Part shown: positions 1-59,344 of the stretch, piece by piece
Layout: the number at the start of each line of letters is the position of its first letter
Numbering within the stretch: the first letter of the stretch is position 1
Source: Piromyces finnis finn
Taxonomy: Eukaryota > Fungi > Neocallimastigomycota
Direction of reading: 5' to 3'
DNA length: 64,000 nt
Assembly (NCBI GenBank): GCA_002104945.1
Contig: MCFH01000035.1
Span: 1 to 64,000 of the forward strand
Position numbers and translations under genes: made by a program
The notes under the pieces: model-generated
The model's input: the letters and a program-made list of their open reading frames with translations, nothing else
Told to the model about the DNA's origin: nothing
The model's database searches: none

Positions 1-505
1 TTGAATATACAAAATTTTTATTATAATTAAAATGTAGTTGATATTTGTGTAAAAATTTATTGCCTAATAACAAATCTGTTGGAAGATTTTTAATAATTAG
101 AAATTTTTCTTTAAAAGTAATTAAAAATTTTGAATGATTAATATAGATAGTAGTCTTAAAATATAAGAAGGTGTATGTATCAATAAATATTGAACCACTA
201 ATTCCATTTATTTCAATTGAGTGTAATAATTTGTGTGGTTTTAGTTTTAATTTATTGACCAAGTTGATTGAAATAAAGTTGCAATATGAGCCACTATCTA
301 AAATTAAATTGTATTGATTTTTATTAATTGAATTTTTTAAATCATAAAGTTTGTTTAATTTAATTGGGATAAAAAATTTTAAGTTGAAAAATGTTGTAGG
401 CAATTTTTTATTTATTTTAGAGTCATATGTAGGAAAGTTGTAATGTATTATTTTTGTATTATGAACTCTCTTAGACTCTCTTGAGAGTTCATTTCTTAGT
501 TTTTT
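1..505 (-). CDS. Pol N-terminus (retropepsin-type aspartic protease), partial, in the -1 frame relative to gag
   Basis: Manual translation of the minus strand is open from about 520 to base 1: ...NQYNLILDSGSYCNFISINLVNKLKL...INGISGS...KNLPTDLLLGNKFLHKY. It has the LDSG catalytic motif (L codon at 301-299) and the D-LLG flap/terminal motif. There is no ATG, so it is absent from the ORF track. Confidence 0.9.
461..505 (-). other. Programmed -1 ribosomal frameshift signal (slippery heptamer plus hairpin)
   Basis: In-frame A-AAA-AAC at 505-499, a 6-nt spacer TAAGAA containing the gag stop, then a perfect 10-bp stem ATGAACTCTC/GAGAGTTCAT (492-483 and 470-461) with a 12-nt loop. Confidence 0.85.
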
Positions 506-1407
506 GAGTTCATTTTTTGAACTTTATTGACATAATTATTATTATTGTTTGAATTTTGATAATGGGTTTTATTCTTATTGAATTTCCTATTGTTTCTCTT
601 ATTGTAATGTTGATTTTTATTATTATTATTATTGATATTTAATTTATTATTAGTAGCAAGAGAATTTTCAAAAATTATACACTTTGTAACCATTTCACTT
701 AAAGTGTTAGGTAAAATATCAGCTTTCTTAATTTCATTCTTATATTTTGGATGTAAACCATTTAAAAATATTAGTGAAAGACTAATGTCATCTATCTCTA
801 AACAACGACTTAAATCTCTAAATTTGTTAATATAATCGTTCACTTTTCCATAAGCTTGTCTTAATTCTATTAATTGAATCATGGCTAATTTGGTACTGGT
901 AACATTTGAAAAAGCTTTGTTTAATTCACTTAATAGTTCGTTCATAGTCATAGGAGTAATACCATCTTTATATTTAATATGATACCAAGTTCTGGCAGAA
1001 TCACGTAATCTAACAACAACAAAGTTAATTTTTACTTCTTCAGATAGTTGATTGTTAGGTGGAGTTTTAAAGGTAGCTTGGCAGAGTTCGCAGAATAACT
1101 CAGTCTGAGTAGTATCACCAGTAAAGAATCCTGGATCTGGTACTTGTTTGATAGGATAGGTTCTATTACGCATTATAACATCATGATCTTCATCATAATC
1201 AGTAGAAGATTCCTCGGTTTCAGTATAATTAGCACGACTCTTAAGTTCCTTTAACATAGCATCCATACGTTCTAACAAGGAGGTGGTATTTTTATCCAAT
1301 TGTTGAGTGATATACTTGTCTAATTCACCACAAAGATTTTTCTTAAATTCTTCTAAATCTTGAGGCTTTAGGAATTGTTGAACTGGTTTAGGTGTTGGTT
1401 GAGTCAT
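496..1407 (-). CDS. Retrotransposon Gag (capsid-like), 303 aa, no CCHC knuckle
   Basis: PDPGFFTGD...ELFCELC...F and LRQ..G.V.DYINKFR.L..FLNGL..K motifs typical of Ty3/gypsy gag. It lies between the LTR/PBS and the protease. Confidence 0.88.
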   Translation of the reverse strand: MTQPTPKPVQQFLKPQDLEEFKKNLCGELDKYITQQLDKNTTSLLERMDAMLKELKSRANYTETEESSTDYDEDHDVIMRNRTYPIKQVPDPGFFTGDTTQTELFCELCQATFKTPPNNQLSEEVKINFVVVRLRDSARTWYHIKYKDGITPMTMNELLSELNKAFSNVTSTKLAMIQLIELRQAYGKVNDYINKFRDLSRCLEIDDISLSLIFLNGLHPKYKNEIKKADILPNTLSEMVTKCIIFENSLATNNKLNINNNNNKNQHYNKRNNRKFNKNKTHYQNSNNNNNYVNKVQKMNSKN

Positions 1408-3914: not shown

Positions 3915-3917
<3 letters not shown>

Positions 3918-4171: not shown

Positions 4172-7064
4172 TTAATTAAAATTATAATACATGTTATATA
4201 AAAAAATAGAAATAAAAAAATAAAAATTAAAAAAAAAAAATATGCTTAAATAAACACAATTTATAACGTTAAAAATATAGTTATAAATTGTTTTTCTTAC
4301 TTCCATTTCAGGGAGTAAGTATGTGATGAATTGATTCTTATATTTATTGTAAAAAAGTGTAAAAAGATCGTCAAGAAAGCTAAGTGAAGAAGTTCTGTAT
4401 TTAGAGAATTCAGAACATTCTAATATCCAATGGTAAAAAAATTGTTCGTCATATGGACAGACACGAGGGCAGTCAGGAGTAACTCTATTACTGGCAATTG
4501 CAATTCGGGTTGTATATTCATAACCGTATCGAATACGAATAATCCAGGTAATTCCTAAATTTAAGTGAGGTTTGTTGAGACCGATATGCATTAGGCGATT
4601 TGAATTAAGGAATTTGTTGTTAGTATATCTGAGGGCTTTACTTCCATTATTTAGGCTACTATTATTCCAATAATATTCTCTAATATCTTTAGTACTTTTA
4701 ATATTTATTTTCATAAGCTTCTTATGTAGTGAACAAGATTCTTTGGCCCAAGAGTAATGAGACATGGGAGGAATAGATCGGACGAGATCTTTAATAATAC
4801 AATTTGATTTTCTCCATTTAACAAAGCATTTCACTTGTTGCGCAGCACAAATACCTGAAAGGGTAGGAATCTTCATATCTCTTGTAAGAGCATACAGACT
4901 AATAAATGAATTACGTTCGAAAATAAAATCTTTGTTATTAAGACTTTTATTGTGAAAGTTATTGATACTCCATAAAACAGCAGTATTGATAAGAGATTGG
5001 ACTCTTCTAGTTCTATTTTTGTTGGAACCAAGTAAAGGAGCATAATAAGAGACTTTGCTTAAAATATAAGTATGAATTACTATATTTTTTAAGCCAATAG
5101 GAACACAATTGTTAGTGATGAAGCTCTTAAAAGAGAATAAAGATTTCTGAACTTTTTTGTACATATTAAACAGAATAGGAGTCAGAGAAAGATCTTCGTC
5201 GAATAGGATTCCAAGATAAGTATAGCAAGAAACCTTTGGAATCGAGTACATACCGGCGGTGTAAAATGTTGGGTCGACATAACTAGGGGATATATTAAAG
5301 TTGAATAGTTTAACAACAATAGTTGCACATTTATTTATTCCAAAAGACATTTCATTTAAATTGGCCCAATCAAGGACTAGATTGAGCATCTTTTGAAGGT
5401 TCTTCTTACTAGGAGCAATCAGAACAATGTCATCCGCGAAAAGGCCACCACAGCAACATTTATTTCCTAAGCTAACTCCAAGCCTTTCACATTTATTTAA
5501 AATATCATTGATGAAGAGATTAAATAGAATAGGAGAAAGAGGACACCCTTGTCTTACACCACGATTGATAGGGAATTCATTAGAAAGTATATCCAAGAAA
5601 CGTGCACGAGCTTTTGAGGTAGAGTAGAGATTATTGAGAAAATCAAAACACTTACCACGTATACCTAATTTATATAGCTTTGTAAGGATATTAAAAATAG
5701 GAACTGGATCGTATGCTTTTTTAAGGTCAAGAAAAGCAACATAAGTGGCTTTTCCTTTAAATTTTCTTCTTTGACAGATTTCTCTAATGGAAATAAATAG
5801 GCTAATACATTCTTCTTTATTGCGAAAATCAAAGTGCTCAGGTCTTATAAAATTATGAGAAAGAGCATACTTTGAAATTCTATCAGTTACAATTTTTGAA
5901 ATGATTTTAAGACCTACGTTGATGAGAGAAATACCACGATAATTATTGCAATCTGAAAGATCGCCTTTCTTTGGAATAGAAACAATGGAAACAGAGTTCC
6001 ATTTCAAAGGAAAAGATCCATTCCAGATTTTATTAAAAATTAATTTAAGACAATTTCCAACAGACTTATGTTCTTTTTTCCAGTTCTTCGTTACAAAAGA
6101 AAGCTTTGAAGAATTAAATTGGGATACCATCGGGACCTGGAGCCTTATTATTATTCTTCATTGACAGAACAGTGTTTCTAATTTCCTCAATGGAGATGGG
6201 ATCATTAATATCCCATGCTATTTGATTGATATGATTGAATTGGAAGGCTCTTTCCCAGTAACCCCGATTTAAGCTATGATTTGTAACATCAGATGCAAGA
6301 TTTTCATAATGTTCAACCCAACGTTTTAGTTGTTCTTGAGGAGTAAATAAATCCTTGCCACTCTTGTCCTTAAGAGTTGAAACATGAGAGGATGAATAAC
6401 TTGGTTTGGCAAGTTTTTTAAGGCCTTTCCAACCTTGTCTAAAGCTTTTATCAATAAAATGTTTACCGATAGAAACAATATTAGCTTTATAAGGATTGGA
6501 TCTGAATTTACTCTTAACCTTTTTGATAGTATTATATAAATTTTGGTATATGGAGAACTGGTTAAGATAATTATCCATGTCAGCACAATATGAAAGGGGT
6601 TTAGTATTTTTGTAAGCCAGGTGTTTTTCATGTGATAAATTTTTGATGTATTGAGGGCAATGGAATGCTGGACCTTTTAAATCTGCAGGCACAATGGCTT
6701 TTATATCTTTACCTATAGTTTTGGAAGTATCTAAAGATTTGGAAACCATATCGTCAGCCGATAGGCTATTGCAATTTGCTTCAAGCTCAGAAGCTAGAAC
6801 AGCAAAGCGATTACTAGTAAGAATGTCAGAACACTTTGTGTTACAGATATGACTTGACCACTTAAAGGTCTTCTAAGGCTTTTTGAAACCATCAGAAGTG
6901 TCTTTTATACAAGACACAAGGATCGGTTTGTGATCAGAAACATCGTGAAAAACTTCGCAAACTGAAGATTTGTTTATGTGTTCTGTCATAGCTTTGTTGT
7001 ATATAATATGGTCAATGCATGAAAATTTAGATCCCTTTTCCCATGATTGAAGCTTTGATAACAA
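4172..7064 (-). mobile_element. Non-LTR retrotransposon (APE endonuclease + RT LINE), 5'-truncated and disrupted
   Basis: Endonuclease C-terminus IDHII...SDHKPI (6873-7064), linker with KAPGPDGIP, RT motifs NYRGISL, FLDLKKAYD, GVRQGCPLSPILFN and LFADD, and a C-terminal degenerate zinc knuckle (CP...HWILEC). In-frame stops at 6873-6875 and 6114-6116, plus a +1 frameshift in the T6 run at 6074-6079. Confidence 0.93.
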
Positions 7065-16635: not shown

Positions 16636-21122
<4,487 letters not shown>

Positions 21123-21721: not shown

Positions 21722-23154
21722 CTATATAGTAATTTTTGCTTCTTGGTATTTATTATCACGTTCAATAAGTGTTGGCAATCCTTCAGTACCAAACATATGA
21801 TCTGGCATAGCTCTATAATCACCTTGATTATCATTTCTTTTGGTAAGACTTCGTTTAAGTCCTGTTGCAGATCTCTTAAGACCGGAAGCAGATCTTGATA
21901 CACTACGTTTAAGATTACTAAAAGCATCTGGGAACTTTTGTTTTAATTCATCATATTTACTTGGACTTTGTTTCTTTAAATATAATAATCCTATACCTGC
22001 AGCTCCAGATACGGTTACAGCAGTGGAGAGAATACCAATAGTGTATGAACCACCTTCTTCATCTGGAAATTGACTTTCAAGAGCTTTTAACTCTTCATCT
22101 GAATAATTGGTTTGTTGTGGATTTATCGTTTTAGTTTGACCCACAATTGGAGCTTCCTCTGGAATAGTCTTTTCATTTGTTTCATCAGTAATTATATTTA
22201 TATCACCAATAGCTGGAACAACACTGATATTTGTTGAAGTGGCCTGGGAATTTGGAAGTGTTTTAGCCATTGATGCAAGTACTTTTGTTCCCATTGTGGT
22301 TGCAATTGAAGCGGCTGAAGCATTTGGAATGGCAACAGTCTTTGATGAAATAGCATTAAAAGCTACAGCATTAGTATTTGGAATACTTTTAGTTGGGATT
22401 GTTTTGGCTGTTGATCTATTTTGAGTAGTGGTTGTTCTTACTGTTGTAGTAATTCTTCTTGTTGTAGTTGTTCTTGTTGTAGTTGTTCTTCTAGTAGTTG
22501 TAGTAGTTTTTGGAATGGCGTTTTTATTAAAAGTACCTCTAGTTTCATTATTTTTAATCATTCTCAAAGCTTGTTCCTTATACATTGAAACAAATTGAGA
22601 TTTACTTAAACCTAATGATTTAGCAAAACTTTCAGTTTGACTAGGTGGGTAAATAATTTCTCTTGAGATTTTACCATTTGAAAATGCAGCAACCCAAATA
22701 ACAGGGAAGACACCATCATTTATTCTACGAACACTTTTAAAAGCTTCTCTACTAAGATCAATATGAGAATCTTTACATTCATGACAGGAATCAATAATTT
22801 TTACTTTTACCATTTTTCCAAGATATTGTTCTTCTCTATTATCAACAGCCATAACTACCGCGTATGAATCACACAAATTTCTATTATATTTGGTACTCTA
22901 TTATTTATAAAAATATATTTTTATATTATTAATAATTTTATCAAATAATTCTTATTATACTATATTTTACATACAATTGCTGCATAATAATCAGTATCAG
23001 GTTTGGATTGATGATCATAACATGAAGGATTCAATTCAGAATTTACATTTTTATCTTCTGAACCACCATACCAAGTAGCTTGATAGGCATCACCACTAGT
23101 TTTAATAAAGGGGATGTGTAAAGTTAGAATTATTAAAAAGAATATAATCTTCAT
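21722..23154 (-). CDS. Secreted-type RlpA/expansin-like double-psi beta-barrel protein with Thr-rich stalk, TM helix and cytoplasmic tail; 2 exons (23154-22975, 22897-21722)
   Basis: Signal peptide MKIIFFLIILTL, ATWY, YYAAI|STKY, VKIIDSCHEC..SHIDLSREAF (DPBB signature), T/R-rich linker and hydrophobic GILSTAVTVSGAAGIGLLYL followed by KK. The GTATGT...TAG intron 22974-22898 keeps frame. Confidence 0.82.
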
Positions 23155-27602: not shown

Positions 27603-28136
27603 ATGTCAAGTTCTGAAAAAACTGATTGTAAAGTTTGTTCAAGTTTTAGAGCCTGGTCTAAAAATGAAAGTAAAAAATTAAATTCACCAACAGTAACATC
27701 GACCACAAAAAAATGTAGAATATGTGATGTTGTTAATTTTTCAAAAAATAAATTACAACAACTTTTTAGTAATAAAGTTCAATCAAAAGAAATTTTTGAA
27801 TGTCCACCAAATGCTCAAGAATTAGGTAGAGCAACTTGGACTTATCTTCATTCTGTTGCTGCTTATTATCCAGAAAAGCCAACACGTAAACAACAAAAAG
27901 ATATGCAATCCTTTTTACGTATATTTTCAGAATTTTATCCATGTAAACCTTGTGCTAAATATTTAGTTAAAGAAATAAATGAACATCCACCACAAGTAGA
28001 AACAAAATCAGCATTAAGTACATGGGTATGTCAATTACATAATGAAGTTAATGCTAGACTTGGAAAACCAATCTTTGATTGTTCTAAAGTTGATGAACGT
28101 TGGAAAACCGGTCCACCAAATGGATTTTGTGATTAA
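27603..28136 (+). CDS. ERV1: FAD-linked sulfhydryl oxidase Erv1/ALR, intronless
   Basis: CPP..ELGRATWTYLH..AAYYP, redox YPCKPCA, W.CQLHNEVN.RLGKPIFDC...ERW, and N-terminal CxxC shuttle motifs. Confidence 0.95.
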   Translation: MSSSEKTDCKVCSSFRAWSKNESKKLNSPTVTSTTKKCRICDVVNFSKNKLQQLFSNKVQSKEIFECPPNAQELGRATWTYLHSVAAYYPEKPTRKQQKDMQSFLRIFSEFYPCKPCAKYLVKEINEHPPQVETKSALSTWVCQLHNEVNARLGKPIFDCSKVDERWKTGPPNGFCD

Positions 28137-34181: not shown

Positions 34182-36011
34182 ATGAACGCAAAAAAATTTT
34201 CTTTAATGTTATTGGCATTGTTCGCTAAACATGCCCTTTCAGATTGTCCAGATGGAATAAAAAAACAAGGATATCCATGTTGTTCAAGTTGTATTGTGTA
34301 TTTTTCTGATAAAGATGGCCAATGGGGTGTAGAAAATGGTAAATGGTGTGGTATTCAAGATTATTGTAATGGTTTACCTACTGATTGTCCATCTTCTATT
34401 ACAAGTCAAGGTTATGCTTGTTGTAGAGGTTGTGACGTTGTATATACTGATGAAAATGGTGATTGGGGTATAGAAAATGATTATTGGTGTGGTATTTCTC
34501 AATCATGTAAGAATAAACCTGTTGATTCAAACTCAGCTCCACCATCTCAAGCTACTTCTCAAGCCACTTCAGATGATTATGTAGATCCAAATAGAAAGGT
34601 ACAACCTGTTGTAATGTCAGACTATTCTTCAGGGGTATCTGTTCACGATCCATCTGTTGTCAAAAATGGTAATAAATATTATATTTTCGGTTCTCATATG
34701 GATACTGCTTTTACTACTGATTTATGGAAGTTTACAAAGTTATATACAGGTGTTAATGAAAACAATAAAATGTTTTCAAATTTATTCTCAAAATCAAATT
34801 ATGGTGCTTTCAACTTTGTTGGTAAAAATAGTGAAGGTGGATTCTCAGTTTGGGCTCCAGATGTTATGTTTAATAAGAGAATGAATAAATGGGTTCAATA
34901 TTTCTGTACTTCTTCTACATATATTAAATCCAGTATTTGTTATGCTTTAGCTGATAATATTGAAGGTCCATACACTTATAAGGATTGCTTCATCTTCTCT
35001 GGTATGGATTCAGGTAGTGTTGGTAAAACAAATATTAGAGCTATTACTGGTAGTGATAACGGTAATCGCTATTTCCCAGGTAACAAATACAATAATAAGG
35101 TCTATCCAAATGCCATTGATCCAAATGCATTCTACGATTTCAATGGTAAATTATGGTTGGCTTATGGTTCATGGTCTGGTGGTATCTATATCTTAGAATT
35201 AGATGAAAGTACTGGTCTTCCAAAACATAACATCAATAATGGAAATAACATAGATAAATACTATGGTAAGAAGTTAGCTGGTGGTAATCATCAATCTATT
35301 GAAGGCCCATACATTTTACCACATAAAGCTGCTGGATATTACTATCTTTTCGTTTCCTATGGTACTCTTACATCTAACGGTGGTTACCAAATTCGTTTAT
35401 TCCGTTCAAAGAACCCAGATGGTCCATATACTGATGCTGCTGGTAGAGAATTTATGAGTGGTACTAATTCCAACTTTGGTGTCAAGATTATGGGTAATTA
35501 CAATATTCCAGGAAGAAGCCAAGCTTACATGGCTCCAGGTCACAATTCTGCTTTAATTGATGACAATGGAAAAATCTTACTCTTCTATCACACTCGTTTC
35601 AATGATGGTCAAGAATATCACGAGCCACGTATTCATCAAATGTTCCTTAACAAGGAAGGATGGCTTGTTGCTGCTCCATATGCTTACACTGGTGAAACCA
35701 TTTCTCCAACTGGTTATAGTATGAATGATATGGTTGGTAGTTACAAGTTATTATTCCACTTCCATACTAGAATTAATGGTGAAATTTCTAATCTCTACAC
35801 CATTAACTTAAACCAAGACTTTACTGTTACTGGTAAATACACTGGTACTTGGTCTTATGATAAGGGTACTCATTACATGACCATTACTCTCAATAACTAC
35901 ACTTATAGTGGTGTCTTTGTTAAGCAATTAGATGAAGCTAAGTCTGCTACTGTTACCTCCTTTACCGCTATTGGTACAACTAATGATAGTGTTTGGGGTG
36001 TTCGTTTCTAA
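34182..36011 (+). CDS. Cellulosomal GH43 endo-arabinanase-like glycosidase with signal peptide, two N-terminal fungal dockerin (CBM10-like) modules and a C-terminal beta domain; intronless
   Basis: Two C....QGY.CC..C...Y.D..G.WG.EN..WCGI repeats; GH43 catalytic motifs VHDPS, WAPD, AIDP, IEGP, PGHNS and YH.RF. Confidence 0.92.
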   Translation: MNAKKFSLMLLALFAKHALSDCPDGIKKQGYPCCSSCIVYFSDKDGQWGVENGKWCGIQDYCNGLPTDCPSSITSQGYACCRGCDVVYTDENGDWGIENDYWCGISQSCKNKPVDSNSAPPSQATSQATSDDYVDPNRKVQPVVMSDYSSGVSVHDPSVVKNGNKYYIFGSHMDTAFTTDLWKFTKLYTGVNENNKMFSNLFSKSNYGAFNFVGKNSEGGFSVWAPDVMFNKRMNKWVQYFCTSSTYIKSSICYALADNIEGPYTYKDCFIFSGMDSGSVGKTNIRAITGSDNGNRYFPGNKYNNKVYPNAIDPNAFYDFNGKLWLAYGSWSGGIYILELDESTGLPKHNINNGNNIDKYYGKKLAGGNHQSIEGPYILPHKAAGYYYLFVSYGTLTSNGGYQIRLFRSKNPDGPYTDAAGREFMSGTNSNFGVKIMGNYNIPGRSQAYMAPGHNSALIDDNGKILLFYHTRFNDGQEYHEPRIHQMFLNKEGWLVAAPYAYTGETISPTGYSMNDMVGSYKLLFHFHTRINGEISNLYTINLNQDFTVTGKYTGTWSYDKGTHYMTITLNNYTYSGVFVKQLDEAKSATVTSFTAIGTTNDSVWGVRF

Positions 36012-37001: not shown

Positions 37002-37898
37002 ATGCTTTTATCAAACATTAAACCATTAAATACTTCCTTATTAAGACCAATTTCGAATTCTGTTTTTACTGGACTTAATATTAATAGAAACCAATACAAA
37101 TCACTTTATTTAAACACTAAATTATCAACTATTTCTTTAATAAACAAAAGATACCACAATACTGAAACTGCAAATGAATTAACTGCACCTAAACAAGGCT
37201 ACAGTACAGAAGAATATACCAGTAGAAATAATAATAGAAAAAAGGAAAAAAAGGAAAAAAAACGTTCAGGTTTTTTAAGTGGAGGGTAATTCTAGATACC
37301 TTTTTTTTATTATTATATATTAGTAGAATTAACAAAAAATATTTGTAAAAAAATATAATATGGTATATGCTATCTAATGATGATAATTATAGTTTATCAT
37401 TTAGTAAATTTTAAAAGTTTTGGTTTTATAAAGGATTTCATTTAATTTGGTTTATTTTTTAAAAAAAAAACTATAATTTGTTATTTTGAGAAAAATATAT
37501 ACAAATTTTAAAGAATGAAATTCTTATTATTTTTTATATTTCATAATTTATATAAATATTATAAATAATAATATTATATTTAATAGAATGTTTGGTTTCT
37601 TACTTGGTTTTTCTTCTGTATTTGGTATTGGATATTTCTTTTTAATTCAAGATTATCAAGTTAGTAAAATATATCTTATGTCTCATACTTTCATTAATAT
37701 TTAATAATATTATAATATTTTTTATATTAAAATTTTAATCTTTTTTTTTTTTTTTTTAAAAATAGATATCTAATGATTCATTAAGAAAAAGTATTGATAC
37801 GTTACAAGGTTCTATAATAAAGGTTTATATAGATAGTTGCTTATAATATATAATATATAAATTATTAAAATAATAATTTAAAAATGAATAAATTATCC

Positions 37899-37943
<45 letters not shown>

Positions 37944-38412
37944 TTATAGATATAGATATCAATAGATATATCGATTTTATTAAATCCTATGTTTGAAAAC
38001 TTTATTAACTAAAATTTAATTTTTATAATTCAAAAGATAAAAAGAAATAATAGAGAAATTGACGAATTAATTGAAGAATTAAAGAAACTCAAAAGTGAAG
38101 CTATTACTAAAGATGAATTTAATGCTTATCAAAATAATATTAAGGCAGTATTAGTAAGTATCTATAAAATTCAAAAAAAAAAAAAAAAAAAAAAAATAAT
38201 AAATGCTTCAAGTAATAATACAATTAATATTTTTGATCATAAATAATAATAATAATTATATTATTATTGTGTAAAAACATTTTTTTTTATAGAATGAAAT
38301 TAAGAAGGAGCAGACAAAAGAAAATTCTAATTTATCAAGAATGAATGATAATATAGCAAAAAATCTTCAACAAAAGAATAATTATAACTTTTTCCTTCCA
38401 ACAGATGAATGA
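37002..38412 (+). CDS. Small single-TM coiled-coil protein with predicted mitochondrial/hydrogenosomal presequence; 5 exons (37002-37285, 37587-37659, 37766-37822, 38037-38153, 38293-38412)
   Basis: All four GT-AG junctions keep frame: MLLSNIKPLNTSLLRP...KRYH...SGG|MFGFLLGFSSVFGIGYFFLIQDYQ|ISNDSLRKSIDTLQGSIIK|IKRNNREIDELIEELKKLK...|NEIKKE...PTDE-stop. Confidence 0.75.
37901..37939. repeat. (AAT)n microsatellite in an intron
   Basis: Read directly. Confidence 0.9.
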
Positions 38413-40393: not shown

Positions 40394-41115
40394 AAAAAGA
40401 TAAAATAATAAAATTATAACATTAAAATAAAATTAAATAATTAAAATAAAAATTTTAATATAATAAAATTTTATTTTATTTTTTATTTCATTTTAATATC
40501 TTAAAATCAAATAAAAAACAAAATAAAATAGAGAATTAAAACAAATAAATAAAAAGAATAATAGAATAAAATAAATTTATAATAATAAAATAATTAATGT
40601 AAGTATACCGAATAAAAATGATATATAATTAAATCTCAATTTGTATATATATATTATTATATGTTATTTGTGATATATGTTGTGTGAAATTTATTTTTAT
40701 TTTTCACTGTAAAGTTTGTTATATAAAGTCTTAATAAGAAAGAGTTATATTTTATTTTTTATTATTATTTTAGTTTGTATAACTAATTAAGAATAAAAAA
40801 TAATAACTGCTTTTATTTTTATTTATATTCTCTTTATAACAGATTATAAATAATAAATAAAATCAATAAAGCAAAGCAAAACAAAAGAACAAAAATTAAT
40901 ATAAAAATTAAAAAATAAAATAAATATTAGAATTAACAATTATAAAATAATAACAATAAATTAAAATAAAATAAAGCAAATAACAAATAAAATAAAACAA
41001 ACAATAAAGCAAATAATAATAATAAATTAAAAAATAAAACTATATATTATATAACAAATTAACAAAAATAAATATTCAAATAATTTAAAAATATAATAGC
41101 ATATATAATATAAAA

Positions 41116-43950
41116 ATGGCTCCAATAATTATTGACACTGGTATTTTCGATAAGCCAATTCTTATCCAAAATGACATTGTTAATCAATCAAGAATTGTAA
41201 AAGAAATTATAATTGAAGAACAAAAGCCAATTATTATTGATACTGGTATTTTCGACAGACCAATTCTTGTTCAACCACAACAAATTGCTCTTGGTGAAAA
41301 CTTAAAGCAAGTTAGTCAAAGAAGCTACGTTGTTCAAGAAGGTGACAACGAAGTTCAAGTTGAAGAAGTTGTTTATGAAGAATATATTGAAGATGATGGT
41401 GTTGAAGGTGAAAAAGTTATAGTTGAAGAAATTGTCGAAGAATATATTGATGAAAACGGAAACGTTATTAGAGAAGTTTCTGAAGTAATTGAAGAAGTTA
41501 TTGAAGAAGAAAAGCCAGTCATCATTGACACTGGTATTTTCGACAGACCAATTCTCATTCAATCTGGTGTTGAACAACCACAACCAAAAGAAGTTGTAGT
41601 CGAAGAACCAGCTGAATGCAGAGCTGACACTGGTTGTTGGTGGTTATTCGCCAAACCACAAACTGCTGAAGTTGTTATTGAAGAACAAAAGCCAATTATT
41701 ATTGACACTGGTATTTTCGACAGACCAATTCTTATTCAATCTGGTGTTGAACAACCACAACCAAGAGAAGTTGTTGTTGCTGAAGAAGAAAAGCCAGTCA
41801 TTATTGACACTGGTATTTTCGACAGACCAATTCTTATTCAATCTGGTGTTGAACAACCACAACCAAGAGAAGTTGTTGTTGCTGAAGAAGAAAAGCCAGT
41901 CATTATTGACACTGGTATTTTCGACAGACCAATTCTTATTCAATCTGGTGTTGAACAACCACAACCAAGAAAAGTTGTTGTTGCTGAAGAAGAAAAGCCA
42001 ATTATTATTGACACCGGTATTTTCGACAGACCAATTCTCATTCAATCTGGTGTTGAACAACCACAACCAAGAGAAGTTGTTGTTGCTGAAGATGAAAAGC
42101 CAATTATTATTGACACTGGTATTTTCGACAGACCAATTCTTATTCAATCTGGTGTTGAACAACCACAACCAAGAGAAGTTGTTGTTGTTGAAGAAGAAAA
42201 GCCAATTATTATTGACACTGGTATTTTCGATAGACCAATTCTCATTCAATCTGGTGTTGAACAACCACAACCAAGAGAAGTTGTTGTAGCTGAAGAAGAA
42301 AAGCCAATTATTATTGACACTGGTATTTTCGATAGACCAATTCTCATTCAATCTGGTGTTGAACAACCACAACCAAGAGAAGTTGTTGTAGCTGAAGAAG
42401 AAAAGCCAATTATTATTGACACTGGTATTTTCGACAGACCAATTCTTATTCAATCTGGTGTTGAACAACCACAACCAAGAGAAGTTGTTGTAGCTGAAGA
42501 AAAAAAGCCAATTATTATTGACACTGGTATTTTCGACAGACCAATTCTTATTCAATCTGGTGTTGAACAACCACAACCAAGAGAAGTTGTTATTGAAGAA
42601 CCAGCTGAATGTAGAGCTGATACTGGTTGCTGGTGGTTATTTGCTAAGCCACAAGTTCAAGATGAACCAGCTGAATGTAGAGCTGACACTGGTTGCTGGT
42701 GGTTATTCGCTAAGCCAGAAACCTCTGAAATTATTGAAGTATCAGAAGCTGAAGCTAAGGAAATTGTTATTCCAGTTTCAGAAGAAAAGGATAATACTGT
42801 TTTAAAGGTTCAATGCAAACTTCCATTAGGATATGAAGCTAAACAATGGGTTCCATATGCTAGCCGTTCCATTGAATGCTACACTAGCTTACCACTTGGT
42901 ATTGATTTCCATACTTCTGAAAGACAATGGGTTCCATATGCTAACCGTTCCATTGAATGCAACACTAGCTTACCACTTGGTATTGATTTCCATACTCCAG
43001 AAAGACAATGGGTTCCATATGCTAACCGTTCCATTGAATGCTACACTAGCTTACCACTTGGTATTGATTTCCATACTCCAGAAAGACAATGGGTTCCATA
43101 TGCTGGTCGTTCACTTGAAGTTTTATGTGCTTTACCACTCGGCTATAACCCAGTTGAAGAAGTAAAGATTACACCAGTTGAAGAGGAAAAGGTTGTTAAG
43201 GAAAGAGTTATTGAAGAAGCTCCAGTTGTAGAAGCTCCAGTTGACAATTCTGAAGTTATTGAACAATTAAAGAAAGAAATTGAAGCTAGAGATCAATTAT
43301 TAAAGAAGAAGGAAGATGAATTAAATGAATTAAAGGATATTGTTGATAAAAAGAATAATGAACTTAAATTACAAAATAATGATTACCAAAATTTAATTAG
43401 ATCAAATGAAGAATTAAACCACCAACTTACACAATTAAATATTATTAACAAGAAGTTACAACAAAGTGTTAATCAAACTAGTGGTTTAATAACACCAAAT
43501 GAAAAGGAAATTGATGAAAAGGAAATTGATGTCGATAATACTTTATTAAATTCAGAATTAGAAAATGTTGCCATTACTAACGAAATTAAATTAAAGAATT
43601 CAGAAGTTGAAAGACTTACTTCTAGAATTGTTGCATTAAACCAACAACTTGCTAGACTTACCTTAAATGTTGATGAAGAACATAAGAAGGATAGAAAAAT
43701 AATTTCAGAATTAAAGTCAAGAATTGATGGTTATTTAGAAAAATTAGTTAAATTAAACGGACAAGTTAGTGCCTTAACTTTACTTGTTGATGAACTTAAG
43801 CGTAATAAGGAATCTGCTACTAGCGAACCATCTGATTCTAATGGCAACAATGCTCTTGCTAAGAAACATCTTTACCTTTCTCCAGAAAGCAGACAAATCA
43901 TTACAAATATTGTTTCTAGAGCTACTCAAAATAAGTGTAGCATTTTATAA
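41116..43950 (+). CDS. Unrecognised 944-aa intronless protein: three internal repeat families, coiled coil and C-terminal CaaX (CSIL)
   Basis: Uninterrupted 2835-nt ORF in very AT-rich DNA with strong codon bias, synonymous variation between repeat units and a heptad-rich C-terminal quarter. Confidence 0.9.
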   Translation: MAPIIIDTGIFDKPILIQNDIVNQSRIVKEIIIEEQKPIIIDTGIFDRPILVQPQQIALGENLKQVSQRSYVVQEGDNEVQVEEVVYEEYIEDDGVEGEKVIVEEIVEEYIDENGNVIREVSEVIEEVIEEEKPVIIDTGIFDRPILIQSGVEQPQPKEVVVEEPAECRADTGCWWLFAKPQTAEVVIEEQKPIIIDTGIFDRPILIQSGVEQPQPREVVVAEEEKPVIIDTGIFDRPILIQSGVEQPQPREVVVAEEEKPVIIDTGIFDRPILIQSGVEQPQPRKVVVAEEEKPIIIDTGIFDRPILIQSGVEQPQPREVVVAEDEKPIIIDTGIFDRPILIQSGVEQPQPREVVVVEEEKPIIIDTGIFDRPILIQSGVEQPQPREVVVAEEEKPIIIDTGIFDRPILIQSGVEQPQPREVVVAEEEKPIIIDTGIFDRPILIQSGVEQPQPREVVVAEEKKPIIIDTGIFDRPILIQSGVEQPQPREVVIEEPAECRADTGCWWLFAKPQVQDEPAECRADTGCWWLFAKPETSEIIEVSEAEAKEIVIPVSEEKDNTVLKVQCKLPLGYEAKQWVPYASRSIECYTSLPLGIDFHTSERQWVPYANRSIECNTSLPLGIDFHTPERQWVPYANRSIECYTSLPLGIDFHTPERQWVPYAGRSLEVLCALPLGYNPVEEVKITPVEEEKVVKERVIEEAPVVEAPVDNSEVIEQLKKEIEARDQLLKKKEDELNELKDIVDKKNNELKLQNNDYQNLIRSNEELNHQLTQLNIINKKLQQSVNQTSGLITPNEKEIDEKEIDVDNTLLNSELENVAITNEIKLKNSEVERLTSRIVALNQQLARLTLNVDEEHKKDRKIISELKSRIDGYLEKLVKLNGQVSALTLLVDELKRNKESATSEPSDSNGNNALAKKHLYLSPESRQIITNIVSRATQNKCSIL
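41680..42600 (+). repeat. Coding tandem array of nine 102-bp (34-aa) units
   Basis: ATTGACACTGGTATTTTCGA recurs at 41701, 41803 and onward with a 102-nt period; unit DTGIFDRPILIQSGVEQPQPREVVVAEEEKPIII. Confidence 0.95.
42810..43150 (+). repeat. Coding tandem array of about four 81-bp (27-aa) units
   Basis: CAATGGGTTCCATATGCT recurs with an 81-nt period; unit QWVPYANRSIECYTSLPLGIDFHTPER. Confidence 0.92.
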
Positions 43951-45314
43951 ACAGCGTTAGTACTTTTATTTATCTTTTTTATTTTCTATCAGTAAATTAT
44001 TTTTAAAACACACAGAAAATAATTTAGAAAAAAATATTTTTAAACGACATCAATCAAACGTAAAAAAATTTCAAAAAAAGGAAAAAACTATTAATATTAT
44101 TAATAATAGCAATAATACAACATCACAATTTTTTTTTATTATTTAATTATTAATCTAGTATTATTTAATAGTATTTTTTTTTTTTTCTTTTTTAACGATA
44201 TTAAAACATTTTAACTTTATACATTAAAATATAAATATTAAAAATATAGATATTAAACATTCATTAATTTATTTAATAATATAATATATAGTATAAAAGT
44301 AGCGTTTAGAATTTATTTATTTTTAAATGTTAATTTTTGTAAAATTTAAAAAAAAATTTTTTACAATAAAAACTTTTAATAATTTAGAAAAAAAAAAATA
44401 TTGTTTTATTTATTTTTTTTTTTAATAATATATATATAATTATTATTATTTATTTAATATATAATATTTTTATTTTAATATATATAATGATTATTTATTT
44501 AAATATTTAAAAGTAAGGAAAAAAAAAGATAGAAAAAAAAAAAAAAAAAGAAATAATTAATATGGAATATATTTTCTATTTTTTATTCTTTTACTTTTTT
44601 TTTTTTTAAAAAAAAAAAGGAATATTATTAAATAATCTTTTTTGTATTGATTGATAATTTAAATAATAATTTTATAAAATTTTTTTAAAAAAAAATAATT
44701 ATCAATAAAGATTATTTTTTAAAAAGTATGTAATTGAAAAAAAAAAAAGAGTAACTAATTATTAAAAAAAAAAAAAAAATAATTTTTTTTTTAAAATGTA
44801 ATAATAACAACAGTAAAAAAAAAAAAAAAAAAAAAAATTGTTATTTAAAACAAACAATAATTAAAAAATTAAATAAAAATGTATTTATAAACCTTTAATA
44901 ATATTAAAAAAAAAAAAAAAAATAGATTTATACATTTTTTATTTTTATTTATATGTATATATTTTTATTATTATTTAATGAATTGTGCCGTTAATTCTAT
45001 ATATTGAGTATTTTTAATGTTAATAATATTATTAGTATTTTTATTTTTATTGTTATTATTATTAGATTAATAAGTTATTGCTTAGATTTACGTTATTTTA
45101 TTTATTTTTTTTATTTATTTAAATTTTAATTTTTATGTTATTTACGTTATATACGTTATATATTAATTATTATTTTTGTTTGATTAATTCCCAAAAAAAG
45201 AATCAACTTTTTTTTTTTTTCACTTTCAAATAGAAAAATTAAATAGTTAGGTGTTATATAGGAAAGAAAAAGAAAATGTTCCATTTCAATTTTTTTTTTT
45301 TTTTTTTTAATGAT

Positions 45315-45478: not shown

Positions 45479-48400
45479 AAGATATTAATAGATATTAATA
45501 TAATTTATTACTATTTTTATTTTATTTTATTCTTATTTTATTTTCTCTTATTAAAAATATTTTATTTTACCTGAATTTTCTCCTTTAATTTCAGTACCCA
45601 CAGAATAGGAACGTATACTTTTCATAGGGGCATTATTATTATCACTACTATTAAAGGTTCCTACTAACATACCTAAGAAGCTAGGTGACGGTTGCCATAT
45701 TCTAACTAATGCTTCTTCTAAGGAATATGATGCTATTAATTTACCATCTGGTGAGAAAGAAACAGCTGTAACAGGTTTTTGATGACCCTATATAAATTTA
45801 GTGTTAAAATATATAATTGTGTTTTCATTATTATTTTAAAGATTTTTATATTATTATTATTTTCTAATATTGATTTATAAACTTACTTCTAAAATTTGCC
45901 AACGAGTACCAGTTTTAAGATCATAGATTAAAATTAAACCTTCAATACTACCAATAGCAATACGTTGAGAATTACCATGGAAAGCAATGTTTGGGAATTT
46001 TTTTACTAAATCATGAAGACTTAAAGTAACGGATTGTATCATATTTTCACGCATATTTGGAACGTTTGGATCTAATGATTTTACAACTGCCTCAACTATC
46101 TTAGACAAATATGGATAGATAATTAATGGTTTCTATAGATAAATTATATAAATAGATAAATAGAAATGTATAAATATATATAATTGAAAAGAATAAAAAT
46201 AAATTTTAATGAATCAACGGTTGTTATTATTATTATTATAATATTACCTTATTAATAAAAAGACTAAGAAGCTGTAAACCTGATTGTCTCTCATATATAT
46301 TTTTTGAATGAACTAAATCAAATGTCAAAGTAGTAATAAATAATGGGGTATTATAAGTAGCAATTTGAATAAGTGCTTGACGAGCTGTAAGATTCATTGC
46401 TGAACTAACACTATGGTTACTATTAGTACGAGCACGTGCAGAGTTAGATTGGCTTAAATTGTCTGCTGTAGTGGAATTAGTATGAATGTCATTTTTATTA
46501 CGGAATGATGTACTTCTGTTTTCCATTGAACTAGTACCATTCTTAATAGCACTACTATTATTTGAAGCCATCGTTGCAGATGTACTATTACTAGATAGAT
46601 TTGCTTTTTGAGTAAGTTGACGATTAAGTTGACCTTTAAGGGATTGTGAAACAGAAGGGGTTGAAGTGGTGTTAATGTTAGAAGTTGAATTAGTATTATT
46701 ATTGATAGATGCTTTACTTGAAATGATTGAATTAGTGGGTGAAGTATTAGTAGAATTATTTGTTGAATTGGAACCTAAATTAGCTAAGGACATTATAAGA
46801 CGAATAACAGCAGATCCATTAATATGAGGTTCCCATACTAAAAATCCTTTACCAATTAATTCTACAGCTGCAATTCTATGTTGTAAACTAGTCTTATTTT
46901 CAATAATTAATAGTAAGGCCTTTGATATTTTACTACAGAAACTATTGATTGATAATTTTTATAAAATAGTAGATAATTATTTAAGAAATATAATAATAAT
47001 AATAATTATTATTAAATAATAAATAGTTATTTTTTTTTTTTCTCTACAACTTTTAAATCTTCTTCATTAGTGTTATTATAATTGTATAAAAAGTAAAATA
47101 TTTACTTATAATTAGACTTTAATAATTCATTTTCATCGGCTCCAATAATACCTAAAAGCATCGCTGCTCTTAATGATATTTTGGTTAATGATTTAGGATC
47201 ATCTATTATTACTATTATCACATATTAAAGAATTAAGAATATATTGTTTAAAAAATAAATATAAAATTCTTTTTTTTTTATGTTCTATTAAAAAAATAGT
47301 TTATTAATAAAAATTAATTATTTATCAATTTACAATAGGGTTCCCAGTAATTTAATATTCTATTTAATTCCTTTTCAGTTATTTTACTCAATGTTGATCT
47401 ATAGAGACATCTTGCTGCTTGTTGAATATCATCTATAATAATTATAAGTTTATAAATATATTTTATTAAAAAAATAAATATATTGAGTTTTCATTAAAGA
47501 AATTATTTAAAAATTACTTGTAGAATCAAGCCAATATTTAGTTAAATGTGAAAAGGATGGATAATTATAATCTGGTCCTACTATACTAGATAACATAATT
47601 CCATAATGAGTAATAATTGATACAACATCATCTTCATTACCTAAATATATTATTATTATTTAAATTATTTAATATCCTAATAAAAATAAAAAAAATAAAA
47701 TGCTCGATTTTAATTATATTATTTACCTTTTTCTGCTGAAAATATTGGTACAAAGGATAAAATTTTTATTAATCTTGATGCTGTATATAATGGTGATATT
47801 TTCCAAACTTGGTCATCTGAAGAGAATGGTGCTAATAATGAAAATTGATTTTCTACTCTATAATTCAATTCATATAAAAGCAATGATAATACAATTATTA
47901 TCTTAACGTTTTACTTATTAAACCAAATATATATATTTCTTTAAACCTTACCCTTTAATACCTATTGTAATATTCTTTCTGTTGGGTTTTAGTCCTATTT
48001 TTTTGACACATATATTATCTAATTCTGTATCAATTTCCCATGTTAAAAGAGATGAAAACAAAAGCTGTGTGAATCTTCGATAAAGATTTGATAAAGACTT
48101 TCCATTTGGGTTTCCTATTCCTTTAAAATGACTTGATTTTAACATAAGTGATATTCCTAGTTGTTTGGATGTTTTATTGGATCCATTTTCTGGTGAAGAA
48201 CGTCCACTTCTTATTTTTTTTGGAGATCCAGGTGTACTTGAATAAGCTGAATTAGACATTCGATGGAAATAATTTATTTCATTTATCAGCTGTTTTATAT
48301 TAATATAGAATACAATAACAGGAATTTGTCCTTTTTATTTATTTATTTATTTATATTAATAAATGTAATTAATATAAAATTAATAATTTAAATTCTTATA

Positions 48401-51400
48401 ATGTAAAAAATATATATCAGAAACTTTTTTATTAATTACCATATGGTATAAAATAAACTGGGAAAATTGACAAAATTTGTTTATTGTTTAATTTTGAATA
48501 ATCAGTATTAAATGGGTTAAATCTATTTATAAAATAGTATCACAAAAATTAAAATTAATTTATAGTTTTTTATTAAAATATTTTTATAATATTTACTTAA
48601 TAGTAACATCGCAATTATCTATTATTTGTTCTGAATAATATGGATCAGTTATGATTCTATCAAGATGGTTAGATTTTAACTATATAATAAAAAAAAAAAA
48701 AAAAAAAAAAAGAAATCTTAACATTATTTGAATATATATATTTTTTATTTATATATTGAAATGTTGAGTTAATTTACATGCCAAACGGAAACAGATTTAT
48801 CTATACATTGAACACATATATAATCGCCATCTAATTTCCATGAAAGACGTGAAACTTCTGAATTATGTCCAGTAAAATGGTATATACTATAAAAATAATT
48901 ATTTAATTAATATATGTTTTTAATTATATAATTTAAAAATAGATTAAAAAAAAAAAAAACCATAAATTCATTTTACCATTCCAATTTTTCCAAATTAAAT
49001 ATTGATATAGAATTATCGTCTGAAAATGCTATAACACAATTTTGTAATAAGTCTCCTTCTTTTTCTTTTGGAACTTGAACAAATTGAGCAACTGCTCTGG
49101 TGTATTCATTATATTTGTATAATTGTTTTCCAGTTCTATTATATAATAATATATAAACATTTATTATTATTATTTTAATTATCATAAATTTAATTATAAT
49201 TTTATAAATATTTCATTATGAATTAAAAAATCACAACTATAAGAAGATTAATACTACTAATGTACATACTCTAGATCCCAAATAATTGTTGATGCATCGG
49301 TACTACTACTAAATAATAATAGCTTTCCATTGGAATTAATTTTTTTAGGTACAAATAAAGAAACTACTCTACTAGAATGTCCATTTAATGTAAAAACTTC
49401 ATTTTCAGATTCTGAAAGGGAATTAATGTCATATAAGAATGGATAGTATAATGGCATGACTTTTATCATTCCACTTTCTATTAAAGACATATTTTTATTA
49501 ATATTTAAAATAAGAAAAATTGGAAAAAAATTAGAATATATATATTTTTGATATTAATCGCCATTATTACATAAAAATTTTATATTTATTAAATTATTTA
49601 TTTATATATAAAAATCATTACCATAACCAAATATAATAAAAAGTGATGAAAATGAAGTTACAGCCGTTACTAATGATTTTTTAGGATAATTATCAAATTT
49701 TACATTCCATAATTCTTCCAATTGAGTCTCTTTTATATATAATTTTTAATTATATGATAAAATAAGTTAATTTTTAATATTATAAATATATTTTGATTAT
49801 AGTATTATTTATAATATTTTTTTATTCATCGTGTATAAATTTTGTATTTACCACAAAATGGATTAATAGTTAAAAATACATCCTCAATAGAACTAGTAGG
49901 GGTATTTATTTCGGCTTGAATAGGAAAACTGTCAGTATTATTTGAATTACTGGTATCTATTGATTTTTTTCGATGATAGGTGACATATTTTGATGGATCA
50001 ATGTATGAATAGAATGACCAATAGGAAATACTAGCTGAGTTATTTATATTTTGAACAGATATAATATGAATTGTTGAGTTATTACTTTTCATACATTGAA
50101 CATCCGCTTCATCGAATGGATTATGAGGATTTATTGATGTTGAAAATTCACCAATTAATGTGTAAGGACTTTCAACGTATAATTAAATGAAAATAAATGT
50201 AATATATATGTTAAATTTGGAGAAACATTAGTAAATAACATAACCATAACCTTATATTAAAAAGTATAGTAATTATTACTTATTTGTTTCCATTAATTCA
50301 AGTTCTAAGTTTGATTTTTTTGTTATTATATGACTTTCTGAATTTGAAAACAGTATTACGTTTGAATCATCTACCTCTGATATTTGATTTTCATTTACTT
50401 TACTCAATTCAGATTTTTGACCAATATAATAAACAAATATTTTTGAATCCTTATTATTTTATAAATTTATTAATATTTATTAATATTTGTAATTTTTTGA
50501 TTTTAATTAAATGTATTAAATTTTTATTAATAAATAATTAATAAAGCTTACTGTTGTCCATAAAATAAATGTTTTTGATGACAAAAATTTTCCCTTTTTC
50601 CATATATGGCCTTGTGGTGATACTATTTTTAATATTGGTAATTCGATATTAAGCTTTTTAGAATACATCTAGAAATTTAAAACATTGAATAAAAGGATTT
50701 GAAATTATATAATTAGATTTTTTTTTTTTTTTTTTAATTTATATAATTTAATTTGATATGTATTTTATTAATAGCTAAAATATATTTAAATAAAATAAAT
50801 AGATATTTACAAGACATATATCTCTTGAAAGAACGAAAAAAATATCATTATTATATTCATTGATACAAATTTGAATAGCTTTTGGTATAGTTTGATTATT
50901 ACTTTTTGTTTCTTCATTAATCAAATTAAGTTCTATTTCATCAAATTTAAATATTGACATTTCACCACTTTCATATGTTAAATATAATTCAGAGGTTTCT
51001 AAATAAAGCATTTAAAATTACAATCATTACTATATTTTACTAAAAATAAATACAATGCTACATTAATAATACTTTAATAATTTACCATTTCTTAATTTCA
51101 TTGCAGATATCCAGTCATTATTTATATTAATAATTTGCTTAATCTATTTAATTATTAAATATTTAATTATTTAATTATTAGTTATTGTTAGTATTATTAT
51201 TCCTATTTAACTTTATATATTAAATACCTCTAATGTATCTACTGATAATATATAAATATCACATGAGTAACCAGAACATATTAAATATTTCCTTGATTTC
51301 GTAACCTAATTTTGAAGTGATTTTTTCAAAAGATGTCGATAAATAAGCTAATTAATTTATCTCTGTAAATAAATATATATACACAATTTATTATTAATGT

Positions 51401-53701: not shown

Positions 53702-59344
<5,643 letters not shown>

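Follow-up and report, generated by a model that had tools for sequence, protein, structure and literature searches.

Introduction

Long coiled coils that are followed by a short tail and a conserved CaaX box are known from the B-type lamins and from NE81 of Dictyostelium. A protein of similar layout is encoded at positions 41,116 to 43,950 of a 64,000-nucleotide (nt) stretch of DNA from the anaerobic gut fungus Piromyces finnis (GenBank assembly GCA_002104945.1, contig MCFH01000035.1, positions 1 to 64,000 of the forward strand), which is referred to as the window in the following. By analogy with lamins and NE81, a lipid-anchored filament or scaffold would be expected. The encoded protein (hereafter the target protein) nevertheless differs from them in that it features neither an intermediate-filament rod signature nor a nuclear localisation signal (NLS) or an immunoglobulin-like tail domain, and only 44 residues follow the rod. 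Moreover, its terminal leucine would call for a geranylgeranyl instead of a farnesyl moiety, its N-terminus carries about 700 aa of unique repeats, and its relatives are confined to gut fungi.

Further comparisons are offered by the alveolins, articulins and epiplasmins of alveolates and euglenids, which possess similar low-complexity repeats rich in Glu, Val, Ile and Pro with a propensity for short strands, and whose sub-membrane role resembles the one proposed here. However, these proteins are devoid of the coiled-coil and CaaX module, and the repeat cores of the target protein (IIDTGIFDRPIL, DTGCWWLF and LPLG..WVP) are unrelated to theirs. The golgins giantin, golgin-84 and CASP, in turn, are alike in combining a C-terminal anchor, a long stalk and N-terminal capture motifs facing the cytoplasm. 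In contrast to the golgins, to which it has no kinship in sequence or fold, the target protein would be held by a CaaX anchor, with a transmembrane (TM) segment arising only upon readthrough of its stop codon, and its repeat-bearing N-terminus is highly multivalent.

In general, a CaaX box with a cysteine at position -4, an aliphatic residue at a2 and leucine (or phenylalanine) as X is subject to geranylgeranylation by geranylgeranyltransferase-I (GGTase-I). A polybasic stretch in conjunction with a CaaX box constitutes the classic membrane-targeting pair, and such second signals govern the destination of the modified protein: polybasic tails lead to the plasma membrane, while endomembranes are reached by default if no second signal is present. 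Anaerobic gut fungi are important degraders of lignocellulose, and their cell biology is almost unexplored.

Here, we propose that the target protein is a membrane-anchored, multivalent scaffold or tether restricted to gut fungi, a reading of its sequence to which we assign a probability of roughly 0.55. A preceding sequence-only reading of the same DNA had described a candidate prenylated membrane-skeleton protein with three repeat families, a coiled coil and a CaaX box. Its description of the architecture was borne out, while the locations it suggested (membrane skeleton, zoospore, nuclear envelope) amount to guesses.

Gene and repeat architecture

The target gene consists of one continuous open reading frame (ORF) with the following features:

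41116..43950 (+): complete intronless ORF, 944 amino acids (aa), TAA stop included (ORF listing and translation)
41122..41163 (+): motif A copy 1, PIIIDTGIFDKPIL, aa 3-16 (regular expression; invariant across the orthologue alignment)
41227..41268 (+): motif A copy 2, aa 38-51 (regular expression and orthologue alignment)
41515..41556 (+): motif A copy 3, aa 134-147 (regular expression)
41605..41658 (+): motif B copy 1, EPAECRADTGCWWLFAKP, aa 164-181 (regular expression)
41671..42595 (+): nine 34-aa (102-nt) units, each with one motif A and a spacer rich in Glu, Val, Gln and Pro (Tandem Repeats Finder, regular expression)
42598..42717 (+): motif B copies 2 and 3, aa 495-512 and 517-534 (regular expression)
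42802..43146 (+): motif C array of 27-aa units with LPLG and QWVPYA.RS.E, four of them full, five LPLG (repeats, regular expression)
43249..43815 (+): predicted coiled-coil stalk, aa 712-900, three long helices (AlphaFold2, heptad count)
43882..43923 (+): short conserved C-terminal helix, predicted within YLSPESRQIITNIV, aa 923-936 (alignment, AlphaFold2)
43936..43947 (+): CaaX box Cys-Ser-Ile-Leu, aa 941-944 (translation, orthologue comparison)
43948..43950 (+): TAA stop; TAA or TGA at the identical position in orthologues (DNA)

Regular-expression searches of the 944-aa translation returned exactly the counts given by the sequence-only reading, namely 12 copies of motif A (P[IV]IIDTGIFD[RK]PIL), nine of them in an array, three of motif B (the CWWLF motif) and four of motif C (QWVPYA.RS.E), as well as the C-terminus KCSIL directly ahead of the stop. 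Motif A starts at aa 3, 38, 134 and 193 and recurs thereafter every 34 aa up to aa 465, with 9 of the 12 copies forming the strict array between aa 193 and 465. Motif B begins at aa 164, 495 and 517, while motif C begins at aa 577, 604, 631 and 658, a spacing of 27 aa, and is accompanied by five occurrences of LPLG. Motifs A and B have a common core, D-T/N-G-hydrophobic-aromatic. On the DNA level, Tandem Repeats Finder reported a 102-nt period with 9.1 copies and 96% matches (41671-42595) and an 81-nt period with 3.2 copies and 97% matches (42843-43104); these repeat arrays are far beyond chance. Copy numbers differ among species, ranging from 8 to 13 for motif A, 3 to 5 for motif B and 3 to 6 for motif C. 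Neither further motif copies nor other ORFs with a CaaX ending occur elsewhere in the 64-kb window. Long ORFs that run through the arrays in other frames or on the opposite strand, at 41644..42576 (-), 41672-42289 (+) and 42833-43165 (+), are by-products of the periodic repeats and were not accepted as genes.

The whole protein is strongly acidic and rich in Glu, Ile, Val and Pro, its net charge amounting to -30 across aa 1-192 and to -33 across the motif A array. The region designated as the stalk holds two copies of a family motif, LN..LA.LTL..DE. Absence of introns and strong codon bias, both part of the sequence-only reading, are likewise confirmed: the ORF is continuous in the window, in Neocallimastix lanati (982 aa) and in several short contigs, and Pro is encoded by CCA in 70 of 70 cases, Gln by CAA in 63 of 63, Gly by GGT in 35 of 40, Phe by TTC in 17 of 18 and Lys by AAG in 39 of 55. 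The bias is real, though part of it is inflated by the near-identical repeat units. The 5' flank (40852-41074) is an A-rich, imperfect short-period tract of AATAA- or AAATAAA-like character, which ends about 40 nt before the ATG.

The CaaX box and its conservation

Judged by its sequence, the C-terminal Cys-Ser-Ile-Leu is a good geranylgeranylation signal, and the putative lipid anchor is well supported because the terminus agrees with the CaaX rule and is conserved. With Cys at -4, Ile at a2 and Leu as X, the window protein displays every sequence feature expected of a GGTase-I substrate. The pattern C-[SN]-I-L is present in nine orthologous sequences, window included: CSIL in the window and CNIL in P0003, P0005, P0006, P0012, P0016, L003, L011 and L014 (P and L denote proteins and DNA loci, respectively). 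Ile at a2 and Leu as X are found in every orthologue, with either Ser or Asn at a1. All available orthologue C-termini retain the cysteine, whose loss would have counted against the prenylation proposed by the sequence-only reading, and the GGTase-I signal that it had identified from X = Leu appears conserved across two subfamilies.

The second of these is a subfamily of paralogues with 25-31% identity to the target. Among them, P0007 and P0009 terminate in CNIL after a stretch rich in Lys and Arg, and CNIL is the true terminus of P0007 since the codons after its stop read GEK-stop. The paralogue on metagenome contig L013 (1372 aa) ends in CIIC after KKKKKKR...K. In an alignment of the C-terminal module, Cys, Ile and Leu are invariant, as is an upstream Y-x-L-S/T-x-E segment. 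The tails of P0007, P0009 and L013 (CNIL or CIIC) recall the polybasic CaaX tails of K-Ras4B and the Rho family; in contrast to these small GTPases, they reside on repeat and coiled-coil proteins of more than 1200 aa. The window protein, on the other hand, has neither a polybasic run nor an extra Cys near its C-terminus. As to contig L013, the full-length paralogue occupies 871-4989 (+) and comprises motifs A, B and C as well as many LN..LA.LTL coiled-coil repeats ahead of its polybasic run and CIIC, and the C-terminal half of an upstream ORF (34..705) is hydrophobic.

Predicted structure

A full-length AlphaFold2 model built from a 7-sequence alignment comprises long helices at residues 712-787, 801-850 and 857-900, with predicted local distance difference test (pLDDT) scores of 70-84, and a short helix at 923-936. 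In each long helix, the best a/d heptad positions are hydrophobic at a fraction of 0.71-0.83, compared to 0.30-0.40 overall. A coiled coil of about 190 aa, close to the 200 aa estimated by the sequence-only reading, is therefore supported by both helices and heptad periodicity, and residues 712-900 are predicted to constitute an alpha-helical stalk with heptad periodicity, through which the protein should assemble into dimers or oligomers. On the contrary, pLDDT stays below 50 for residues 1-711, where short strands appear at motif cores only; a separate run on the motif C region gave a pLDDT of 49.7 and a single short strand per unit. The N-terminal 700 aa are thus predicted to be acidic and disordered. 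No signal peptide or TM helix was found within the 944-aa ORF, the maximum Kyte-Doolittle mean over 19 residues being 0.96. The corresponding claim of the sequence-only reading holds inside the ORF, but has to be qualified by a hydrophobic in-frame extension just past the stop, which is considered below.

Family assignment and distribution

The target protein belongs to no described family, as the sequence-only reading had surmised, and searches of Pfam, of Protein Data Bank (PDB) sequences and of structures with Foldseek were all negative in this respect. In Pfam, the Filament, LTD and IMCp models gave no match even at E <= 1, neither with the whole protein nor with pieces thereof, and the C-terminal 244 aa met generic coiled-coil models only, all of them sub-threshold. 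AAA_28 (41 bits) and Lactamase_B (30 bits) exceeded their cut-offs on the whole protein and were rejected: as no single stretch passes, these totals reflect a weak strand-turn match summed 12 times, and a two-unit piece scored 15.3 and 12.6 bits, respectively, below the cut-offs (22.7 for AAA_28). PDB sequence searches yielded GCN4-type coiled-coil noise or nothing, and Foldseek searches of the PDB with the full-length or the motif C model returned generic helical hairpins and no match at E <= 1e-3. A basic NLS-like cluster is likewise missing, in that no 10-residue window contains at least five Lys or Arg.

A phmmer scan of 1.84 billion representative proteins (cut-off E <= 1e-3) produced 17 matches, about a dozen of which are convincing and carry the same motifs, while P0018-P0021 and P0023 resemble repeat noise. 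All named relatives stem from anaerobic gut fungi, i.e. Piromyces, Neocallimastix and Orpinomyces. A word search delivered six orthologues with 58-70% identity, two of which are annotated as 'hypothetical protein' (Piromyces sp. E2, N. lanati), in addition to the distant paralogues P0007-P0009 with 29-31% identity. Searches with the C-terminal region and with short C-terminal pieces added no new family members. Taken together, the scan and the C-terminal searches indicate, at the level of sequence, that the family is real, small and confined to Neocallimastigomycota as far as the data reach. Motifs A and B are also encountered in gut-fungal proteins that are otherwise unlike the target (P0010, P0011, P0017), with P0010 from Orpinomyces and P0011 having only the motifs in common with the target, and this recurrence fits a role as portable peptide ligands.

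Proposed mode of action and alternative explanations

Residues 1-711 display three kinds of short hydrophobic peptide motif, each strictly conserved, in 12 + 3 + 4 copies. In the scaffold or tether model, the stalk would dimerise or oligomerise the protein. Cys941 would be geranylgeranylated by GGTase-I and subsequently trimmed and methylated. The lipid would then hold the C-terminal end at a membrane on its cytosolic side, and the motif array would reach into the cytoplasm and dock many copies of partner proteins. Since the window subfamily lacks a polybasic or extra-Cys second signal, an endomembrane, either the endoplasmic reticulum (ER) or the nuclear envelope, would be its default target, while the paralogue subfamily with polybasic run and CaaX box looks targeted to the plasma membrane. 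The protein is classed as a putative prenyl-anchored coiled-coil scaffold of novel repeat families, possibly with a novel recoding feature.

Several points weigh against this model. The Ser or Asn at a1 is not aliphatic, which is less than ideal although the CaaX rule tolerates it. A role as scaffold or tether is proposed from the architecture alone, and self-assembly of the N-terminal 700 aa would be just as conceivable. Moreover, efficient readthrough of the stop would leave the cysteine internal and thus not prenylatable. Among the alternatives, a soluble or cytoskeleton-bound structural protein without lipid anchor, for example of the zoospore flagellar apparatus, in which Cys-x-Ile-Leu serves another purpose, would be compatible with repeats and coiled coil, as these would also suit a fibrous protein, and its lineage specificity would match that of the kinetosome-associated structures of gut fungi. 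We regard this explanation as unlikely given that a CaaX-type terminus is kept exactly (Cys at -4 and Ile at -2, with either Leu or Cys as the final residue) across two subfamilies with merely 25-31% identity, one of which pairs it with a polybasic run. Still less probable, and only marginally so to be entertained, is a divergent member of a known skeleton family, be it a lamin-like intermediate filament with CaaX box or a cortical protein of the alveolin, articulin or epiplasmin type. Both likenesses had been drawn by the sequence-only reading, and coiled coil plus CaaX as in B-type lamins, Glu/Val/Ile/Pro-rich repeats as in alveolins and articulins, and a resemblance of LN..LA.L to the start of the intermediate-filament rod speak in their favour. 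Nevertheless, neither likeness was upheld: the lamin comparison finds no Filament or LTD match and no NLS-like cluster, the alveolin-type comparison no IMCp match, and PDB sequences and folds as well as relatives beyond gut fungi are absent in either case, while X = Leu points to GGTase-I and not to lamin-type farnesylation. The membrane-anchored scaffold or tether is the preferred reading.

A conserved segment behind the stop codon

A feature that was not part of the sequence-only reading is a conserved hairpin behind the stop codon in combination with an in-frame hydrophobic extension. In the textbook case of programmed readthrough, a stop is separated by a short spacer from an extended stem-loop. 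A conserved stop, an extension with coding-like substitutions and a candidate stimulatory stem-loop nearby recall established readthrough systems, such as the cryptic extensions with peroxisomal targeting signals type 1 of fungi and mammals or the hairpin-stimulated readthrough of Drosophila hdc and several viruses. The target differs from these in that a candidate TM tail would replace a lipid-anchor signal, and in that its stop context is not known to be leaky. The extended isoform of Drosophila Syx17 (PMC3982998) serves as a further readthrough case for comparison. The features concerned are as follows:

43951..43995 (+): in-frame post-stop extension of 14 hydrophobic codons, TALVLLFIFFIFYQ, and second stop; candidate tail anchor (DNA, codon tests)
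43955..44046 (+): hairpin within the untranslated part of the mRNA's 3' end (3'UTR), its 5' arm being the post-stop extension; weak in the window, strong in five orthologues (RNA folding)

Seven distinct orthologues show this pattern: behind a stop, which is TAA in the window and in Piromyces E2 and TGA in N. lanati, L003, L004, L011 and L014, come 14-20 in-frame hydrophobic codons, usually Lys-Phe, and a second stop. To this set of orthologous 3' ends, C-terminal and short-piece searches, a metagenome scan and the record of P0014 contributed L011/L012 and L014 only. For each of them, 100 nt from the stop (112 nt for L004) were folded, and z was calculated against dinucleotide shuffles. Post-stop peptides and hairpin z values are:

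Window: TALVLLFIFFIFYQ; z -0.7
L002 (Piromyces sp. E2): ISALLFLFFIFFFFKIFF; z -3.9
L003: ILALLFIFFIFFLFKFVFKV; z -3.2
L011: ILALLFLFFIFYLIKF; z -2.0
L004: ILALLLLIFIYIKF; z -6.9 (112 nt folded)
L014: ILALLLLIVIYVYSKFPF; z -6.3
L001 (N. lanati): ILALLLLVAIYIYSKFHF; z about 0, inner stem only

Together with the preceding Ile-Leu, the window extension adds up to some 17 residues, whose Kyte-Doolittle mean reaches 2.76 (17-residue window, stop taken as X) and which, to judge from its composition, would plausibly act as a tail anchor if the stop were read through. Tail-anchored proteins carry a single TM segment no more than about 30 residues from their C-terminal end and no signal peptide; such a segment is absent from the annotated ORF and would arise only with readthrough.

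Substitutions within the tail are for the most part synonymous or else conservative (Ile ATC/ATA/ATT, Leu TTA/TTG, Ala GCG/GCA, Lys AAA/AAG), and its indels are exclusively of 3 or 6 nt. The Nei-Gojobori ratio of nonsynonymous to synonymous differences (pN/pS) of the tail is 0.37 in frame 0 versus 0.77 and 1.37 in the other frames, with a pS of 0.57 compared to 0.55 in the upstream coding sequence; these tests rest on seven related sequences in a self-built codon alignment, and the hairpin is a confounder. In 5000 column shuffles, 1.3% reached a pN/pS of 0.37 and 5.5% were stop-free, with none achieving both. Moreover, non-T bases are scarce at codon position 2 (43/19/54 at positions 1/2/3), and frame 0 alone stays open over 14 codons or more throughout the seven and is also the most hydrophobic one, while syntenic neighbour genes meet the next stop 0-9 codons past their own.

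As to the RNA, the hydrophobic extension makes up the 5' arm of the hairpin, opposite an A-rich 3' arm, and the apex lies near the second stop. The stem begins 7-8 nt past the stop in L004, L014 and L011, and farther downstream in L002 and L003. RNAalifold was run on per-clade alignments. For the Neocallimastix-like clade it recovered 14 pairs, among which two compensatory changes occur, and for the Piromyces-like clade a stem of 19 pairs that is conserved. Nine control 3'UTRs gave z values from +0.3 to -3.1; those of an amylase-like gene (9026-9125, -) and a DPBB gene (21625-21724, -) of the window reached -3.1 and -2.1, and post-stop hairpins may be a more general trait of gut-fungal mRNAs. 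In the paralogue L005, a hairpin directly follows the stop, but its A-rich arm comes before the other and the frame is not open beyond the stop, while the post-stop region of L013, read by eye, is T-rich and then A-rich and encodes 7 hydrophobic codons followed by charged ones.

Two other explanations were discarded. An intron hiding the true C-terminus, as suggested by the protein models P0001 and P0004, which continue past CNIL, is at odds with the DNA, in which the TGA is in frame and no splice donor arrangement is present, and short contigs are collinear with the genomes. Selenocysteine recoding is incompatible with the TAA of two orthologues, and Rfam returned neither a selenocysteine insertion sequence (SECIS) nor any other family match in the post-stop region.

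This leaves two explanations of the segment. With about even odds, it is simply a 3'UTR hairpin of the mRNA that serves stability, localisation or 3'-end formation, the open frame being an untranslated by-product. A hairpin is found in all seven orthologues although stem sequences differ, the compensatory pairs and the conserved stem of the two clades bespeak an RNA structure, two of the nine controls also beat their shuffles, and L005 combines a hairpin with the lack of an open extension, while L013 offers just 7 hydrophobic codons. However, a hairpin by itself leaves unexplained the third-position pattern in unpaired spacer codons, the fact that all indels are 3n and the scarcity of non-T bases at position 2, and N. 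lanati is without the outer stem yet retains an intact extension of 18 codons. The other explanation is dual anchoring, whereby a leaky stop after C-x-I-L, aided by the hairpin, would give rise to a terminated, geranylgeranylated form and an extended form that is tail-anchored via about 17 hydrophobic residues plus Lys. Low-level readthrough could yield such a second isoform given that the conserved hairpin has an in-frame, TM-like 5' arm. In favour of this possibility are the retention of stop and extension in seven orthologues (TAA in two, TGA in five), the codon-like substitutions and indels with none of 5000 shuffles matching both pN/pS and openness, the position-2 deficit in the uniquely open frame, the early second stops of neighbour genes, and the hairpin itself, which is pronounced in five orthologues and preceded by a 7-8 nt spacer in three. 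On the other hand, leaky stop contexts are, for instance, UGA-C or stop-CAR-YYA, and none of the contexts observed (TAA-ACA, TAA-ATT, TGA-ATC, TGA-ATA) is known to be leaky. In addition, the strong stem of the Piromyces-like clade begins more than 20 nt downstream and the window hairpin is weak, the sequences compared are few, related and aligned by ourselves, and a T-rich hairpin arm will incidentally encode hydrophobic residues, followed by Lys and stop codons around an A-rich apex. Moreover, hydrophobic tails encoded by 3'UTRs usually act as BAG6 degrons (bioRxiv 10.1101/2022.07.20.500724; PMC10364623). In the literature, we found no case in which readthrough puts a tail anchor in the place of a CaaX box and nothing relevant on readthrough or prenylation in gut fungi. 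A conserved translational switch between lipid anchor and transmembrane tail of one lineage-specific scaffold is put forward tentatively, as a possibility held at less than even odds.

Gene models and genomic surroundings

Public models of the family suffer from several errors. In P0001 (L003) and P0004 (L004), the TGA stop is translated as Trp, and the models extend into the 3'UTR. The N. lanati locus (L001 6001-8949) is an uninterrupted 982-aa ORF, from which the public 880-aa model P0005 drops 306 nt, i.e. three repeat units, as an 'intron', and in the Piromyces E2 locus (L002 6001-9276) one internal stop in the array is spanned by model P0003, which also has an out-of-frame stretch. Several contigs hold the target gene alone with short flanks. 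Three contigs (L008, L015, L010), which derive from different samples, end in common about 250 nt past the stop; such contigs look like transcript assemblies, which would argue for expression. On L003, a 454-aa ORF with a GMNLN-type repeat and weak pentapeptide-repeat matches (2852-4213, +) begins 90 nt past the tail; since this ORF is not syntenic with the window, the L003 assembly may be chimeric.

The gene order on both sides of the target is syntenic with N. lanati (L001) and Piromyces sp. E2 (L002), and encompasses the following loci:

37002-38412: small upstream gene
46236-47436: downstream minus-strand gene
48973-49110: WD40 gene
54040-55578: PEX1-like AAA ATPase

G+C content of the window is 14-34%. 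Elsewhere in the window, at 34182-36011 (+), a glycoside hydrolase was detected that comprises GH43, GH43_C and a pair of CBM10 fungal dockerins, and GH43 enzymes with CBM10 dockerins are typical components of the gut-fungal cellulosome. This enzyme and the synteny bear out the assignment of the DNA to Neocallimastigomycota. Further ORFs comprise a glycogen-branching-enzyme-like one with CBM48 and alpha-amylase (9123-10922, -), a DPBB (expansin-like) one (21722-22876, -), an Erv1/Alr sulfhydryl oxidase (27603-28136, +) and a C-terminal fragment of a thiamine pyrophosphate enzyme (20367-21122, +). Retrotransposon remains at 496-6749 (-) include ORFs of which one is gag-like (496..1407), one encodes a reverse transcriptase (4172..6130) and one, adjoining the latter, has 211 aa (6114..6749), with a tRNA-Ala(TGC) at 3296-3369 (+) located between retrotransposon ORFs.

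Concluding remarks

For the annotation of gut-fungal genomes, the family exposes traps such as TGA being read as Trp, repeat units being spliced out and frameshifts in public models. If the post-stop extension were translated, functional readthrough would gain a further class, namely that of an anchor switch, and the gene would provide a compact stop-plus-hairpin cassette for recoding studies in an extremely AT-rich eukaryote. Apart from that, the target is a codon-biased, and by this token apparently well-expressed, phylum-only gene with a clear predicted membrane-targeting signal and three new high-copy peptide motifs, which may form a private intracellular docking code as they recur in other gut-fungal proteins. 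The target protein is thus a handle for a lineage-specific membrane-associated structure and for the partners that would bind its motifs.

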